From Syncephalis fuscata S228 (lineage: Eukaryota > Fungi > Zoopagomycota): DNA of 64,000 nucleotides. The notes under the pieces are model-generated. The model ran no database searches, was not told where the DNA came from, and was given only the letters and a program-made list of their open reading frames with translations. Made by a program: the position numbers and the translations under genes. The stretch is taken from assembly GCA_025786725.1 (NCBI GenBank), contig JAHLTZ010000005.1:186001-250000 (forward strand), written 5' to 3'. Shown here piece by piece: positions 12,380 through 50,457 of this stretch. Numbering within the stretch: the first letter of the stretch is position 1; each line of letters begins with the position of its first letter.

Positions 12380-13673
12380 ATGACTTCTACTCGACCAGGA
12401 AGAAATGCGCATCTGCGCCATATAACAGCTGATTCAGACCGTGTACGCGGTACGCTACAACAACCAGTCTATCGCTGGTAAGAATACTGCAATAGATACA
12501 CTTTTGCATAATAATACTATAATATAATATAATAATAATATGACGCGACGACCTGTAACATCTAGGGAAATGCAGTGGACCTACCCCGAATCAGATAAGC
12601 GCCAGCATTTACGTGTTCGTCGTTGGGTTAAGAGTAGGTTATTAATGTAACATTATAGTATAAATAGCTTATTCAATGGATGTTCCTATTAGCGGAACAG
12701 CTTGCCGATATTGAACCGGATCGAGAGGATACACCAGCGATGATGACGCCACGCGATGTAAGTTATTAATAATAGTAATATCAATAAAACTAATTAATAT
12801 TTAAACTAGTCAAATGTTAATACACCCATGAATATATCTTTATTGCCACCAGAAGGTGCCACACCTACATTTAGTGCACCTGCCACACCAATACCACCAA
12901 ATACTCATTCAATGGAGGTAGATAGTCCGGCACCTTCTGCTATAGCTGCAACAACAACAACAACAGTAGAGACGGTAGCAACTGCAGCAATGGTAGAGAT
13001 ACCTGAAATAGCAACAGAACCAAAACAGCCAATAGCTTCTGTAGTAGAAACAACAACAGAAGCAATGGAAGTAACATCTGTGATAACAGAAACCCCATCC
13101 ATTGTTCCAGTAGCAATAGAAACGGCGGATGTAACACTATCACTGCCTGTAGCTATAGAATCACCCAAAGTATCAACACCTGAAGTAATAGCACCGGCAG
13201 CAGTATCTGCTTCAACTATACCAGTTCCTATTCCAGATGCTTCTCCATTAGCTTCACCAGATCCAATTATGTCTACAACGGAAAAGGTTGACCATACATT
13301 TGATAATACTATCAGTCTACCACCCACCGATACTGCCATTATCGATCCTACTGCCAATATAATAGATGATGCTATTACTACAAGTATTGACAATCAAATT
13401 AACAGTTTTATGAATGCATCTGCCAATATTGCTGCCAATATAGAGCATAATACTAACACTATGGTCAATACTGATACTAGTGTTGATACATTAGTTGATT
13501 TCAATACTGAACAAGCTATACAATCAACAGCCACTTTATTATCGCCAACTGATGAATCTACAATGATTGTGGATTCGATGGAAACTGTTACTGAAGTAAC
13601 CGAGAAAACAATGTCATCTACAAATGCTCCACCATCGGATATATCTACATCGACAACAATGCCATCTATTTAG
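12380..13673 (+). CDS. BCL7-like protein (SWI/SNF-associated) with Thr/Pro/Glu-rich tail
   Basis: Spliced N-terminus YRWEMQWTYP...LRVRRWVK resembles BCL7 VRKWEKKWV...LRIYKWVP; 4 exons ending in ORF 12828..13673. Confidence 0.6.
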
Positions 13674-16900: not shown

Positions 16901-17320
16901 ACCAATAGATTGAGTATAGTTTTTGGCTAGTAAATCACTAAATCTATTAGCGCTAGCGTTTGTTAATGTCTTTTCCTTTGTTGTGTCAGCTTCTTTGCGT
17001 AGCTGTTCAAGTGTATAACCTTGACTAAGCGGACTACGAACGACACAATTGGAGCTGGCCGTTAATGTACGACGTCGATGTTGTAGCCTATGATTGGCAA
17101 TATCAGTATCAATAAAAAGCGGCTTTTCCTCCAAATCACTGTTAATATCTTTATTAAAATCAAATAGCTGCTGCGATAAAGGTTGCTGCTCCAGCTGTTC
17201 TAGCTGTTGCTGCTGTTGTTGTTGTTGTTGTTGTTGTTGTTGTATTTGTTCTGGCTGTTGTTCAATAGGAATGGAACGAGACAAGTCTTGTTCTAGTGAT
17301 TGTGTACTCGTAACCGTCAT
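13994..17320 (-). CDS. DUF726/TMCO4 (Mil1-like) membrane protein with alpha/beta-hydrolase motif; several apparent frameshifts
   Basis: QKIAYVGLC, DVRWTV, YDARAR, GLATLGGGL..GLSAGLLAP, VDNPW, RPVTLCGYSLGARVI, DWVLGFLYR; one intron ~15967-15896. Confidence 0.9.
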
Positions 17321-44866: not shown

Positions 44867-45598
44867 TTAGTTTCCGCAAACAACTGACTTTTCATGTTTG
44901 ACGCACTTGGTCGCTGTAGGGCAACCAAGGGTAACCCAAGCACCGTTGTTGCATATTTTTGTAGAGTTACCGTCGCAGTCCCAAGTACCAGATACACAAA
45001 CACCTTGAGGACCACCAACTGGAGGCGCGGGAGTTGCTGGAGCGGAAACATCTTTAGTCTCGCTCTTTATAACAGGACCAGCGCTTGCTTCTGTTTCCAC
45101 AGTTGTATTTACTGGAGATTCATTACTCTCATCATCATAAATCTCTTCTGTGTCTTCAGTTTCTGTTTGCGTTGTAGCATCGGAATCAGTTACTTCCGCT
45201 GTAGGAGCTGTAGGAGTGGTAGACGTTGTAGGAGCTGTGGTGGTTGTAGAAACTGTAGACGTTGTAGGAGCTGTGGTGGTTGTAGGAGTTGTTTCTTTGC
45301 TTGGCTGCGTTGGAGCCGGAGCCGGAGCCGGAGCCGGAATTGGGGCCGGAGTTTCCTTGTCCTTAAACATGGCAAGGATCTTAGTTGTTAAGTCTTGGTC
45401 GTTACACTTGCACATCAAATTGGCTTCAGTAAAGTCGTAGCAACGATTAAATTGGATGTTTGGACCAATTTTTAAGCAAGTTGACTGGCAAGTCTTTTTC
45501 CATTCTGGATGGAGGCATGGCACTACCGTATCGTCAGCGGATGCAGCGGCAGCGGCAAACGCTATGGTAATAAGAACAGCGACGATTGATGATTGCAT
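44867..45598 (-). CDS. Secreted protein: CSab-defensin-like domain + Pro/Thr/acidic linker + CBM19-like chitin-binding domain
   Basis: Signal peptide; C-x8-C-x3-C-x11-C-x9-C-x-C; PA/TTAP repeats; C-terminal CVSGTWDCDG..KICNNGAWVTLGCPTATKC. Confidence 0.8.
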   Translation of the reverse strand: MQSSIVAVLITIAFAAAAASADDTVVPCLHPEWKKTCQSTCLKIGPNIQFNRCYDFTEANLMCKCNDQDLTTKILAMFKDKETPAPIPAPAPAPAPTQPSKETTPTTTTAPTTSTVSTTTTAPTTSTTPTAPTAEVTDSDATTQTETEDTEEIYDDESNESPVNTTVETEASAGPVIKSETKDVSAPATPAPPVGGPQGVCVSGTWDCDGNSTKICNNGAWVTLGCPTATKCVKHEKSVVCGN

Positions 45599-47134
45599 GT
45601 TGGTATATGGAATGATATGGCTTGTGATATATCAAAATACTGGCCGGCAGAATTTTGTAAACGTGAGTTGAAGTCAGTGTAGAAAGCAAATAGATGGTAT
45701 GAAGATAAGTTGAACTTGTAGCATTTGCGAAGGCTATTTATTTAAACTGAACGAGATAGCTTGGCTTATACTGCTTGCATGGCGAGGTGACATATCGGGA
45801 TTGTAAGAACTTAACGCTGATTTAAAACTTGTTTCTTTGGGGCCCATGCCCATGTGTATGTCAATACACAAAAAGGTAGTACTTGTCAAAAACTACGGGC
45901 CATTCTTAGGTGCACTGAAGCGCTGTTTTATTTTTCCTTGATAGACAGGATAGGTGGTGGCACTTTAGTAAAAAGGGGTGCAAACATAGGACAGTGATGG
46001 CACCAACAAAAGATTTGCGGGTTGCTTTGATATCAACTCCGTTTGTTTGAGGGATGGATGTACATTCATAATGGTGACTGAAACATCTGATGACAAGGCC
46101 ATGCAGCACAGCTTCTATGGATAATATCGATTCAAAAGCACCGTTTTTGTAATTCAAAAGGCTTGCCGTTCCTACTTTGGAAACAAGATATAGCTACCTA
46201 TACATTTCAAGTACATAATGATTTGTATAGTCATCAAGAATCAGGAGAGAGTACACCTGAAACGATGGTTTTGAAAATGACTTGACACTGCATATGATAC
46301 CGTTATCATTGGACAGTTTAGCATTAATGCCGTTATGGCTATTGTTACTACTACTGTTATTAGTACCATCATTAGTGTTATTTATTTTCAAGCATTAAAA
46401 CATAAGGTTTGTCACTTTGTTGAATTATGTGTATACAAATATAACTTTTAAACGATAATATTAAAACGAACAACCGTGTAATGCTTCGAGTTAAAATATT
46501 TTAACAGTCTAAAGGCCATGGCGTGCATATTATTGATTTGCTATCATGTCACTTTAATTAATACAAACCTTGTAAATTATGCACCACTACCATGTAATTA
46601 TTATTGAAATAGGCATGATTACTATTTCATTATTAATTCCCATTTCATTTTACTGGTATTTAAAACCGTTATTTAGTAACTTATCAACTAAACTGTAATA
46701 ATTATTAGTCGATTGAAAAAGTGATCTAATAGTCATTGATATATTCTCGAGTTATCTTCTAAGGAAATCTATTTTATAATATGGCCAACGTAATAGATAT
46801 TAAGAATCGGTATATGTTGTTTTCAGGAACAATACTATAGCAATTTCTAGATTACAATACCAGCATCAAGCCTTTTAAAGGTACACCAATAAAACATGTG
46901 GTTAATTAAATTGATCGTATAGAAAAAACGAAGGTTTACTACATTTACGTTTGACCATTTTATCAAATAGCGGTAACATCGATGATTTATAACCATTTTA
47001 GTAAACGAATAAGTTTCATTAATATTTTAAAAAAGCTCAATTAGCTTATTGCTTTATCTTATTAAAAAGTAAAGTTTTTAATATTATAGTTAGTTATTGT
47101 GTTGGTTTCGACTAATTATTATTACCTTATTGAC

Positions 47135-47377
47135 TTATTTCTTTTCCTCAAACTTAGCAATTAGTTGGCTTGTCAGATCCTGGCCATTGCACTTGCACAT
47201 CAAATTGTTTTTGTCATAGTCGTAGCAGCGGTTGAATTCGATGTTTGGGCCAATCTTTAAACACTCTTCTTGACAAGTCTTTTTCCATTCGGGATAAAGA
47301 CATGCAGCTCCATCTGCCGCAGCAACGGTGGCGGCAAACCCAGCGATAACAAGTCCAACGATAATTGAGGATTTCAT
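47135..47377 (-). CDS. Small secreted CSab-defensin-like protein (single domain)
   Basis: Signal peptide + CLYPEWKKTCQEECLKIGPNIEFNRCYDYDKNNLMCKC, paralogue of 44867..45598. Confidence 0.85.
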   Translation of the reverse strand: MKSSIIVGLVIAGFAATVAAADGAACLYPEWKKTCQEECLKIGPNIEFNRCYDYDKNNLMCKCNGQDLTSQLIAKFEEKK

Positions 47378-48431
47378 GCTGTTTGGTATATAAGATGATA
47401 GAATTTGTGAGATGTAAAATACTGATCAACAGAATTTATGGCAGTAATTTATGGTCAGCATAGAAAGCAAATAAATGTTATAAAACTTATTGTGTGTTAT
47501 TTAAATAGATAGATTGTTAAGCAACACAAATCAGTTTGGCATATAATGTTTGAAAATTTAGGCTAATAAAACTAGAGTTATTAAAGCATAATGCATATGT
47601 AAAACCTGTTTCTTCTTGGCATTCATAGTAGCGTATGTCTCGGAGTGCGGAAATGTGACATTCGTGGAAACTATGAGCCATTATTAAATAAATCAAAACA
47701 TTGTTCTACCTCAAATTAAGGCAGTAAAATAATCAATAGCATTTAGTAAAATAAGATGTGGATATAATATGGTTACAATGCTAATAAAATGTCTGTTGAA
47801 GATTTGATGTGTTCATTACCAGCTTTTATTTCATTTCACTAATGTTTAAAAAGTTATTTAATTTATTAATTAGGTTGTGGTAATTATGGTTAATTAAAAA
47901 TAATGGATTTAATAGCTTCAATATATTTTTTAATTATTTACTAAAATAAACTGTTGTGTAGCATGTTCAACGTAATAAATATTAAAATTGATATATATAT
48001 ATATATATTATTCTATGGAACAATACAGTAATGCCGTACAGGCTATAATATTTGTATAAACTTTTCAAAAGCATATTAGTAAAATATATCGTGCATGAAA
48101 TTAATATCATAGAGCAAACAGGGGCTCAATACATTTACGTTTAATTTTAATTTTTTATCAAATTGAAATACTTGTTGCCATTAAAACTAACGTTTATTTC
48201 CAAGTCAATTGCAATGAGTATTTATCTTCATATCTGCTCAATAAACTAAGTATCTGAATAACTAATACCTAAATAAGCTTGTTAGCACTTCTAATTAGAC
48301 ACACAATTTTAAAACTGCACTAGCTATACAATAAATACTGGCTATTTACATTAGTTGTAAATTATATTGATTTTTTAAACGACTATATATTGTGTTTAAA
48401 ATGAGTCATTATTTATTAAACACATTTGCAT

Positions 48432-48562
48432 TTAGTTATTTCAGGCAGTTGCTTTGGTCGACCTAGCGCATTTGGCTCTCGAGGGACAGCCGGTATTAAT
48501 CCAGCGCTGTTACTGCATAACTTAGCCATAATGCCATCATAGTTCCAGGCACCATTTTCTCA
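48432..48562 (-). pseudogene. Relic CBM19-like domain beyond the stop codon of the third paralogue
   Basis: *ENGAWNYDGIMAKLCSNS/WINTGCPSRAKCARSTKATA*NN* aligns with the C-terminal domain of 44867..45598. Confidence 0.8.
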
Positions 48563-49225
48563 AGCTTCATCAGCAGATGGAGAAGCTGGACCATCAGTTT
48601 TCTTGGCTTGTTTATGCTGCTTTCCTTTGCGATGATTTCTTCTGGGTCCTTTACGACCTTTAGACTTCTTAGTGTCCTTTTTAGTGGGCTTCTCAGGTTT
48701 AGTTTCGGTAGGATTCTTGGCAGGTTCATTGGAGTCAGCTTCGACAGGTTCCTTGGGATCAGTCTTGCCAGGCTTTTTGGAGTCAGTCTTGTTAGGCTTT
48801 TTGGAGTCAGTCTTGTTAGGCTTTTTAGACTCATCGTCGACAGGTTCTTTGGGCTCATCTCCGACAGGTTCTTTGGGCTCATCTTCGACAGGTTCTTTGG
48901 GCTCATCTTCGACAGGTTCTTTACTAGGCTTTTCAGGAGAAGAGGGCGGTGTAGTTGGAGCTGGAGCTGGAGCTGGATTCTTGTTGTCCTTAAACATGGC
49001 AAGGATCTTAGTTGTTAAGTCTTCGTCGTTACACTTGCACATCAAATTGGCTTCAGTAAAGTCGTAGCAACGGTTAAATTGGATGTTTGGACCAATTTTT
49101 AAGCAAGTTGACTGGCAAGTCTTTTTCCATTCTGGATGGAGGCATGGCACCACCGTATCGTCAGCGGATGCAGCGGCAGCGGCAAACGCTATGGTAATAA
49201 GAACAGCGACGATTGATGATTGCAT
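48560..49225 (-). CDS. Secreted defensin-like protein with KEPVEDEP / KKPNKTDS repeats and basic tail
   Basis: First 80 aa nearly identical to 44867..45598; 24-bp tandem repeats; Lys/Arg-rich tail. Confidence 0.85.
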   Translation of the reverse strand: MQSSIVAVLITIAFAAAAASADDTVVPCLHPEWKKTCQSTCLKIGPNIQFNRCYDFTEANLMCKCNDEDLTTKILAMFKDNKNPAPAPAPTTPPSSPEKPSKEPVEDEPKEPVEDEPKEPVGDEPKEPVDDESKKPNKTDSKKPNKTDSKKPGKTDPKEPVEADSNEPAKNPTETKPEKPTKKDTKKSKGRKGPRRNHRKGKQHKQAKKTDGPASPSADEA

Positions 49226-50457
49226 GTTGGTATATGGAATGATATGGCTTGTGATATATCAAAATACTGGCCGGCAGAATTTTGTAAGCGTAATTTGGAG
49301 TTGCGTAGAAAGTAAGTAAATGGTATGAAGATAAGCTGAACTTGTAGCATTTGCGAAGGCTATTTATTTGAAATAATTATGATAAAACAATGTGTTAGGA
49401 GCCCTCATAAGGTTTTGAATGGTACAAACTTGGCACATCAAACACATCTACTTAAGATGATGGCCACAATATGCTAAGAGATTGCAAAAGCGGATTCAAT
49501 TGGAAACGCGTATTTCGTGAACTAATCAGTGCTACGTTACATTTAGTTGAATTTAAAACAATAAAGGAGACCAATAGTATACATCATTAAAAAAAGTCAG
49601 TAGACATACGGTTGCCACTATAATATTGTTTAGTTTATTTAATAAATTTAATGCCTTTTTGTTGATTGCAAATAAATGCACTGGCAATATTAGTGCTAAT
49701 GCATTTATACATGTACTATGTCTTTTCTTGAAAACTAAATAGTAAATCTCGCAGATCTTTGTTATGTCTTTTTAAAAAAGGCCTTATAAATACACATATA
49801 TCCCCTGTTTCAGGTACAATATACATGTCATGGGTGTGGACACGTCGTATTTAAAACACAGTTTAATAAAGTTTTGCCAATGCTGTAACGTTTCTTATGG
49901 CTTAATTTGTACATATGAAAATATAATTTAAACTGGTGTAAAAGCTATGATGAATAGCTGTTTATATCATAACTGTTTATTAACTAAAGCACTTTAGATT
50001 ACCGGCTTTAATTAATGTTTGAGTTGTATAATACGCTAATATAAATACTATTAGAAACAACACTTTATTACATTGATTTTGCAAATAAAAGTAGTATTTG
50101 GCAGTAGTATTAAATTCTAGCAATATCTCTCATTGAATTGCATCGTCAGCTGATAAATATCGCAACCACGGGAACTAACCCAGTGATGTCGAGGCTTTTG
50201 ATAGGTAGATTGAACGTGTGATGCGTATGGAAATCCTCTTGCCTAAATTGACATTGATTTTTGCGTGATGAAAACACATGCGCGTGGTCACATGCATCAG
50301 CCTGCATGTTGATATATAAAAAATGATAAGAAGTATAATTGCCAAGATATACTTTGTAATTTGTTCGTTTGCTTATTTACTTGCTTATTCTGCCAACCAC
50401 AGACGTATGCATATTTTATATAACTATTTGTTAGCTGTAAACATAATTGTTTTTTAA

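Follow-up and report, generated by a model that had tools for sequence, protein, structure and literature searches.

Three genes of the mycoparasitic fungus Syncephalis fuscata S228 encode members of a small, unnamed family of secreted proteins, in which a conserved head domain, likely of the CSab (defensin-like) type, would be combined with a C-terminal part that sets the location of the protein. We assign this reading a probability of about 0.6. The genes lie in a stretch of 64,000 nucleotides, referred to here as the window (contig JAHLTZ010000005.1, positions 186,001 to 250,000), and all positions are counted from its first letter.

Gene organization and protein architecture

The open reading frames and their alignment confirmed the description of the cluster in an earlier note on this DNA, namely three co-oriented genes that are intronless, lie on the minus strand and encode a signal peptide followed by six cysteines with the spacing C-x8-C-x3-C-x11-C-x9-C-x-C (Table 1). 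Read by eye, the signal peptides of the three copies have a short polar start, a hydrophobic core and an A-x-A motif preceding the mature end. The tails were also found to be composed as had been described, with a linker and a Cys-rich domain in copy 1, a bare head in copy 2, which ends 3 residues past the head domain, and charged repeats followed by a basic tail in copy 3, whose last 40 residues carry a net charge of +11. Judging from its sequence, the linker of copy 1 is likely an O-glycosylated stalk. The number of repeats in copy 3 varies, the second copy of this gene in the assembly (on contig C48) encoding 197 aa as compared to 221 aa. Copies 1 and 3 share a near-identical block that is made up of 148 nt of upstream sequence, the signal peptide and the head, and downstream of this block the two genes are unalignable.

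Table 1. Positions of the genes, domains and repeats of the family in the window
Feature	Position	Strand	Description
Copy 1 gene, 243 aa	44867..45598 (stop codon included)	-	Signal peptide, head, Pro/Thr/acidic linker and CBM19-like domain
Copy 1 signal peptide, aa 1-21	45536..45598	-	Ends A-S-A before D-D; cleavage site inferred by reading the sequence
Copy 1 head, aa 22-80	45359..45535	-	6 Cys; predicted CSab-like core and C-terminal helix
Copy 1 linker	45014..45358	-	(Ala-Pro)n, Thr-rich 36-nt repeats, acidic stretch
Copy 1 C-terminal 6-Cys CBM19-like domain	44870..45013	-	Pfam match below cut-off, Cys alignment, AF2 model
Copy 2 gene, 80 aa	47135..47377	-	Signal peptide and bare head
Copy 3 gene, 221 aa	48560..49225	-	Signal peptide, head, 8-residue Lys/Glu/Pro repeats, basic tail
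Copy 3 tandem 24-nt repeats, 8.4 copies	48721..48922	-	8-residue charged units
Copy 3 basic tail, about aa 182-209	48599..48682	-	Lys/Arg-rich
Relic CBM19-like domain 3' of copy 3	48410..48562	-	Translation and DNA similarity to paralogue L007
Block shared by copies 1 and 3	45357..45746	-	96% identical to 48984-49373 (blastn)

Fold of the head domain

In the CSab fold, the defining arrangement is a CxxxC motif on the helix and a CxC motif on a strand. The head of copy 2 was modeled by AF2 with a pLDDT of 91.1, and the head of copy 1 is 67% identical to the modeled domain. The model contains a helix (residues 10-21) with C14 and C18, strands at residues 25-29 and 39-42, and a second helix (residues 48-58); C40 and C42, which form the CxC motif, are predicted to lie on strand 39-42, the second strand of a beta-hairpin. 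Three disulfides probably hold this domain together; in the cis-defensin pattern, C1 would pair with C4, and C2-C5 and C3-C6 would run in parallel from the helix to the strand. The Cys framework of all three copies fits the expression CX(2,18)CX(3)CX(2,12)CX(4,17)CXC that has been used for the mining of cis-defensins (PMC11561630). The pattern goes beyond chance: of the window's 382 open reading frames of at least 50 aa, the expression matches these three and, apart from them, just two artefacts consisting of Cys runs.

Comparison of the head model with known structures by VIA aligned it with AtLURE1.2 (Z 2.8, 36/39 residues) and mytilin (Z 2.4, 33/34 residues, rmsd 2.3). These defensin matches are weak (Z 2.4-2.8) and rank below the best ones, which are to secretin N1 domains (Z 3.8). 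For two distant members of the family, the nearest named language-model neighbors were all CSab proteins (Toxin_3, nematode ABF and termicin), with scores of 0.75-0.78. Foldseek against the PDB gave no match for the head, a second VIA comparison of one chain added nothing, the atlas shape search returned unrelated rows only, and the head profile had a single chance match among PDB sequences. None of the Pfam defensin and toxin models matched the head, even at E 10; a Defensin_2 search of the genome was likewise empty, and membership in that sequence family was rejected. A weak match of DUF7155 to copy 2 (E 0.056) was dropped as well, being unreproduced in the genome search while the controls were silent too. 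The gamma-core GxC is absent before the fourth Cys, where the 27 members compared have N-R/Q-C with invariant Asn and Cys, and the net charge of the head is between -2 and +1.

The CSab assignment proposed in the earlier note is plausible in view of the confident helix and beta-hairpin model, with CxxxC on the helix and CxC on the hairpin strand, but it gained no support from Foldseek, from profile matches or from a GxC motif, and the structural matches that point to it are weak. On the strength of the model, we consider a defensin-like fold of the head quite probable. The neutral charge of the head, together with its strong conservation, argues against a classical cationic antimicrobial peptide.

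Public databases suggest a different identity. The orthologues of S. pseudoplumigaleata (P0004, P0026 and P0027) bear the automatic UniRef name [quoted passage not shown], and the Pfam CFEM model (PF05730) gave weak partial matches in 2/27 members, with a best E of 0.0015 and, in P0007, coverage of profile positions 7-41 of 66. CFEM is a fungal extracellular helical domain with eight Cys that binds heme or iron in some members. The name would make the head a degenerate CFEM domain, but the head has six Cys, and its confident model has a beta-hairpin rather than an all-helical basket. Moreover, CFEM did not match the window copies at E 10 or anything in the genome at E 1, and no CFEM structure was among the 50 best VIA matches. 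We therefore rejected this identity as very improbable, and the automatic label is probably wrong.

The CBM19-type module of copy 1 and a decayed relic behind copy 3

The earlier note had also recognized a CBM19 chitin-binding module at the C-terminus of copy 1. When searched with CBM_19 (PF03427), this domain scored 17.3 bits (E 0.0048), which is below the cut-off of 20.1, whereas a paralogue (L010, 23.2 bits) and a GH18 chitinase of the same genome (L026, 26.4 bits) scored above it. All six Cys of the copy 1 module align with those of the CBM19 domains of L010 and the chitinase, and they were also aligned with LPMO-like proteins; the same module is C-terminal on the GH18 chitinase and on three LPMO_10-like proteins (L016, L020 and L030). 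The AF2 model of the domain has five strands and a pLDDT of 87. In a comparison of this model with 48,161 chains, 30 reached a Z of at least 2, and roughly 8 of these are chitin binders, among them Der p 23 (Z 4.7), chitin-bound Avr4 (Z 4.0), CBM14 (Z 3.8) and tachycitin (Z 3.2). Because the domain aligns Cys for Cys with domains above the cut-off, and because its model matches solved chitin binders, the assignment of the copy 1 tail as a divergent CBM19 is supported indirectly, even though copy 1 itself does not pass the Pfam threshold.

A relic of such a domain was found behind copy 3. In translation, a stop codon stands at the position of the first Cys and is followed by a Cys-to-Tyr replacement, a frameshift and a second TGA. 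At the DNA level, 48410-48589, which includes the final nine codons of copy 3, is 77.7% identical over 184 nt to paralogue L007 in its C-domain region (E 6e-28). As read from these sequences, the ancestor of copy 3 bore a CBM19-type domain. A contig of probable RNA (48405-48799) spans the relic, which is probably transcribed as part of the copy 3 3' UTR. A relic was also looked for downstream of copy 2, and none was found there.

Distribution, selection and transcription

The whole Cys framework is present in 62 sequences, the window's own copies included. The approximately 60 relatives come from Zoopagales fungi, Basidiobolus and bdelloid rotifers, and none of them has a significant Pfam domain. 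An exhaustive profile search yielded 25 representatives; word-index searches that used copy 2 alone or the C-terminal domain region of copy 1 returned nothing, which is attributed to the limits of the word index, given that the profile search did find representatives. A search for contigs encoding copy 1 found no record. S. plumigaleata and S. pseudoplumigaleata likewise have bare, basic-tail and C-domain forms. This recurrence of the same head with a CBM19-type module, with no tail or with a basic tail in other Syncephalis species supports the modular head-plus-address reading of the earlier note. The heads of fungi and rotifers are 40-60% identical, and the rotifer relatives have a hydrophobic C-terminal tail after Ser that resembles a GPI signal.

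We found no family name or published description for these proteins. Literature searches on defensins in Syncephalis, on defensins together with CBM19, on fungal defensin-like proteins together with chitin binding, and on defensin-like proteins of bdelloids returned nothing relevant, and a 2026 paper on mycoparasite effectors does not mention these proteins. No paper that describes a fusion of the head with CBM19 was found.

Among the four alignable copies, dN is 0.12-0.20 and dS is saturated, with dN/dS of about 0.2 where it could be computed. The GC content is 43-47% in the coding parts and 28-32% between the genes. Contigs of a run that we guess to be RNA extend without joints over copy 1 (44928-45583) and copy 3 (48405-49191), and none of them falls on copy 2; copies 1 and 3 are probably transcribed. 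The frameshift in L007 and the dead domain carried by copy 3 could be taken to mean that the open reading frames are chance or decaying frames without function. This explanation is contradicted by the transcript-like coverage, by purifying selection and by the conservation of the family in about 60 relatives from two kingdoms, and it also disagrees with the coding GC; we regard its probability as negligible.

A weightier alternative, although in our judgement a rather unlikely one, treats the head as a new disulfide-rich alpha/beta domain whose Cys spacing has only converged on that of defensins, and the proteins as non-toxic residents of the wall such as Avr4-like chitin shields, adhesins or wall organizers of the parasite's hyphae and spores. 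It would account for top structural matches of the head that are not defensins, and for a neutral and strongly conserved domain (by dN/dS and by the identity of fungal and rotifer heads). The wall-bound GH18 chitinase of this genome also has the layout of signal peptide, head, Ser/Thr stalk and CBM19, the fold matches of the anchor include the chitin-shielding effector Avr4, and the rotifer relatives with their GPI-signal-like tail can be read as surface display proteins. Against a new fold stand the CSab arrangement predicted by the model, in which CxxxC falls in a helix and CxC in a strand, and the consistently CSab language-model neighbors. The free copy 2 and the basic-tail forms fit structural wall parts poorly.

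Proposed mechanism and significance

Under the preferred reading, a CSab-like head with an interchangeable address, each protein would be exported through its signal peptide. The conserved head of about 55 residues would most likely consist of a cis-defensin-like core with an extra amphipathic C-terminal helix, and the C-terminal part would determine where the head is located. In copy 1, the Thr/Pro-rich stalk and the CBM19-type module are expected to hold the protein on chitin, in the same arrangement that is seen in the GH18 chitinase and LPMO-like enzymes of this genome. Copy 2 would be a free, diffusible head. Copy 3 has lost its chitin anchor by a stop codon, and its Lys-rich repeats and basic tail are expected to give it a preference for anionic surfaces. 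From its neutral charge and strong conservation, we infer that the head recognizes a single specific, conserved ligand in a cell wall or membrane, rather than disrupting membranes by charge. The host wall and the parasite's own wall are about equally probable as the target.

An extended form of this model, which we offer as speculation and consider unlikely as a whole, holds that the head is an unrecognized branch of the cis-defensins, which zoopagalean mycoparasites bring to surfaces in chitin-anchored, free or charge-held form and which acts on the walls or membranes of fungi where parasite and host meet. The head-plus-anchor cassette would have moved once between these fungi and bdelloid rotifers; in the latter it would have expanded to dozens of GPI-like-tailed surface proteins, perhaps with a role in anti-fungal defense.

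To our knowledge, little is known about the molecular basis by which obligate zygomycete mycoparasites such as Syncephalis, a parasite of other molds, attack and cling to their hosts. The family provides concrete candidates for the parasite-host wall interface, being conserved, secreted, apparently transcribed and equipped with interchangeable addresses (chitin, none or a basic tail). We know of no earlier case of a defensin-like head joined to a CBM19-type module and, if the assignment is true, the cis-defensin fold would gain a branch that is fused and non-cationic. Its occurrence in bdelloid rotifers as well makes the family a clean case in which to study gene transfer between fungi and animals.

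Comparison with known systems

CFEM proteins are likewise fungal, extracellular and Cys-rich, often with a Ser/Thr stalk and a GPI anchor, and their Cys spacing partly overlaps with that of the head; they differ in having eight Cys and a helical fold, and their Pfam model has no match on the copies described here. A functional analogue of the role proposed in the earlier note is BbAFP1 of Beauveria bassiana, reportedly a small secreted Cys-rich antifungal peptide that resides on the fungus's own conidial wall, is released and is used against competing fungi (PMC7200012). It is not known to share sequence or domain make-up with the present family or to have a separate carbohydrate-binding module.

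With the CSab or cis-defensins (insect and fungal defensins, mytilin, plant LURE peptides and long-chain scorpion toxins), the family shares a small secreted domain with a six-Cys framework, the predicted helix-CxxxC/strand-CxC arrangement and the neighbors Toxin_3, ABF and termicin. In contrast to these proteins, the head lacks a profile match and GxC, has an extra C-terminal helix, is neutral and unusually conserved, and is joined to long tails and carbohydrate-binding modules.

The module of copy 1 shares with the CBM19 (PF03427) of fungal GH18 chitinases the six Cys, Gly and aromatic positions and a C-terminal site after a Ser/Thr/Pro stalk. However, it falls under the Pfam cut-off and is carried by a small non-enzymatic head instead of a catalytic domain. 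The predicted five-strand, disulfide-rich fold of this anchor also superposes on chitin binders of the CBM14/peritrophin/tachycitin type (Z 3.2-4.7), namely Der p 23, chitin-bound Avr4, the CBM14 of chitotriosidase and tachycitin. Tachycitin is an antimicrobial chitin-binding protein, and Avr4 of Cladosporium fulvum is a secreted chitin-binding effector. The likeness to CBM14, tachycitin and Avr4 is at the level of the fold only, and whereas in those proteins the binder is the entire protein, in copy 1 it would serve as the address of another domain.

Three secreted architectures share one domain

Copies 1, 2 and 3 all lie on the minus strand and open with a typical signal peptide, recognized by eye from the sequence without a predictor. 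The domain that follows, here termed the head, has in all three exactly the spacing C-x8-C-x3-C-x11-C-x9-C-x-C, which bears out the earlier note's claim of three co-oriented genes with a signal peptide and this spacing. Downstream of the head, copy 1 has an (Ala-Pro)n, Thr-rich and acidic linker and then a 6-Cys C-terminal domain (the C-domain, or anchor), copy 2 ends after 3 residues, and copy 3 has Lys/Glu/Pro repeats of a 24-nt unit (8 residues) and a tail of net charge +11 in its last 40 residues. Each copy thus matches the architecture proposed for it (linker plus Cys-rich C-domain, bare domain, charged repeats plus basic tail).

Positions of the three window genes and of a second tandem pair in the S. 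fuscata genome
Feature	Position	Strand	Basis
Copy 1, ORF, 243 aa	44867-45598	-	ORF reading
Copy 2, ORF, 80 aa	47135-47377	-	ORF reading
Copy 3, ORF, 221 aa	48560-49225	-	ORF reading
L007, head and C-domain, several frameshifts	G000:C317:322947-323333	+	
L008, intact, 117 aa, head and basic tail	G000:C317:324684-325037	+	

The copies are real genes and the head is under purifying selection: GC content is 43-47% in the coding parts versus 28-32% between the genes, and dN between heads is 0.12-0.20 with dS saturated (dN/dS about 0.2 where computable). We scanned the 382 open frames of at least 50 aa in the window with the published cis-defensin Cys expression (PMC11561630), which was matched only by copies 1-3 and two artefacts. 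The latter are long runs of Cys codons in open frames (17169-17249, plus strand; 12951-13115, minus strand), which look like low-complexity sequence.

Probable transcription of copies 1 and 3

Contigs of one public sequencing run (X1) cover only copy 1 (44928-45583) and copy 3 (48405-49191), with none on the approximately 3 kb of intergenic DNA. Because the contigs total about 18 Mb, below the genome size of 29.4 Mb, and one runs into an Illumina adapter at 48405, the run was read as a transcriptome. Contigs of this probable RNA run contain no joints over either gene; they support transcription of copies 1 and 3 and the absence of introns that had been claimed, and they support a 3' end of the copy 3 transcript about 155 nt past the stop codon. 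Depth derived from such contigs is not a measure of expression. Unlike the covered genes on either side, copy 2 has no X1 contig, perhaps because it is silent in that condition or was lost to the filters of the run.

The family in S. fuscata and the history of copy 3

The genome holds six family loci: the three in the window, the tandem pair L007 and L008 about 88 kb from them, and L010, with head and C-domain, on another contig. One paralogue beyond the window has a translation identical to S. fuscata KAI9597979.1. L007 is either a pseudogene or a bearer of assembly errors; its public model (P0003) skips the frameshifts and lacks a signal peptide. Two loci occur a second time in the assembly, on contigs C48 and C336, as near-identical or slightly divergent copies. 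The C48 stretch (C48:1-6117; L001, L003 and L005) repeats the entire cluster (44867-49225) at about 98% identity and represents either another haplotype or a duplication in the assembly. Its copy 3 is three 8-residue repeats shorter than that of the window (197 versus 221 aa); the repeat number is unequal, and the tail is therefore still changing.

From 148 nt ahead of the ATG to about codon 80, copies 1 and 3 share 96% identity; past that point no alignment is possible. A decayed C-domain starts right at the stop codon of copy 3, a TGA in place of the first Cys; beyond it one Cys has become Tyr, the frame is shifted and a further TGA follows. This relic, which lies within the 3' UTR covered by X1, matches the C-domain region of L007 at 77.7% over 184 nt (E 6e-28). 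Copy 3 is therefore a once chitin-anchored form whose address has since been switched.

A predicted chitin anchor

The earlier note had assigned the C-domain to CBM19. The last 48 residues of copy 1 score 17.3 bits against the CBM_19 profile, under the cut-off of 20.1. The homologous domains of L010 (23.2 bits) and of the GH18 chitinase of the same genome (26.4 bits) exceed it, and six Cys and two Gly line up in all three. An AlphaFold2 model of the anchor (pLDDT 87, five strands) matched only 30 of 48,161 chains at Z of at least 2. Roughly eight of the 30 bind chitin, among them Der p 23 (Z 4.7), Avr4 with chitin (4.0), the CBM14 of chitotriosidase (3.8), and Blo t 12, Der f 23 and tachycitin (Z 3.2). 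We predict that the anchor of copy 1 binds chitin, and consider this likely.

The genome also contains arrays of LPMO_10-like genes (L016-L024 and L030, on contigs C86, C139, C304 and C309), with His first after the signal peptide, and a single GH18 chitinase (L026, on C224). These proteins all carry this same CBM19-type module at their C-terminus, preceded by a Pro/Ala/Thr-rich linker. The LPMO_10-like genes with a His start are probably AA11 genes, a type reported to be characteristic of mycoparasites; Syncephalis itself lives as an obligate biotrophic mycoparasite (PMC6784888).

Relatives in fungi and bdelloid rotifers

Searched exhaustively with a profile, 1.84 billion representatives yielded only 25 clusters; a second profile search gave 37 proteins, of which just one (P0012) has a precomputed Pfam entry (PF15874). 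The full Cys framework is present in 62 sequences, own copies included. Named fungal sources are S. plumigaleata, S. pseudoplumigaleata, Thamnocephalis sphaerospora and Basidiobolus ranarum. The survey of architectures proposed earlier recovered the bare, basic-tail and C-terminal Cys-rich forms in other Syncephalis species. Three S. pseudoplumigaleata orthologues (P0004, P0026, P0027) carry the UniRef name 'Extracellular membrane protein CFEM domain-containing protein'; we rejected this label for the head, since Cys number, Pfam profile and predicted fold all disagree.

Unexpectedly, bdelloid rotifers were also sources (Adineta vaga, on a 16-Mb chromosome, A. steineri, A. ricciae and Rotaria species); most of their proteins add a related 8-Cys domain and finish in a hydrophobic, GPI-like stretch. 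Relatives of 45359-45535 are expanded there (P0010, P0012, P0013, P0037, P0044, P0052, P0053). In a head-domain tree built on 53 columns without outgroup, the named rotifer sequences all group with 37 environmental ones in a single clade (support 98/90), which midpoint rooting places next to one of two fungal groups. This placement fits, and suggests, a single gene transfer between fungus and rotifer in either direction.

Predicted fold of the head and proposed working

The AlphaFold2 model of the head (27-row alignment, pLDDT 91.1) has a coil (1-9), a helix (10-21), two strands (25-29 and 39-42) and a second helix (48-58). CxxxC (C14, C18) lies on the first helix and CxC (C40, C42) on the second strand, the defining arrangement of the cysteine-stabilized alpha/beta motif (PMC11561630); C5 and C30 would form the C1-C4 pair. 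Pfam defensin and toxin profiles did not match the head, and the Foldseek search suggested earlier matched no structure. Structure alignment with VIA placed secretin N1 domains first (Z 3.8); they have the alpha-beta-beta-alpha order in common with the head. Two cysteine-stabilized alpha/beta proteins, LURE1.2 (Z 2.8, 36/39 residues) and mytilin (Z 2.4, 33/34 residues, rmsd 2.3), matched the head core weakly but almost end to end. For one Syncephalis protein of the family, and for the mature part of P0009, which groups with the rotifer clade, the language-model neighbours were scorpion Toxin_3, nematode ABF and termicin, at scores of 0.75-0.78 that serve as leads only.

Several features speak against membership in the cis-defensins: besides the missing profile matches, the head lacks GxC, having N-R/Q-C instead with Asn and Cys invariant, has a net charge of -2 to +1 and bears an additional C-terminal helix. 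The main rival explanation is a non-defensin head on a wall-resident protein, for example an Avr4-like shield; the modelled positions of CxxxC and CxC speak for the defensin-like fold. We place the probability of a cis-defensin-like fold at about 0.7, a figure for the fold and not for membership by descent.

Most likely, the secreted protein would combine a conserved binding head with an exchangeable address; forms with no tail or a basic one would get to sites other than that of the anchored form. Because the head is neutral (net charge -2 to +1) and conserved, a specific ligand would be expected, not charge-driven membrane attack. The layout of stalk plus CBM19 is the same as that used for keeping enzymes on chitin, and the chitin target would be either the host's or the parasite's own.
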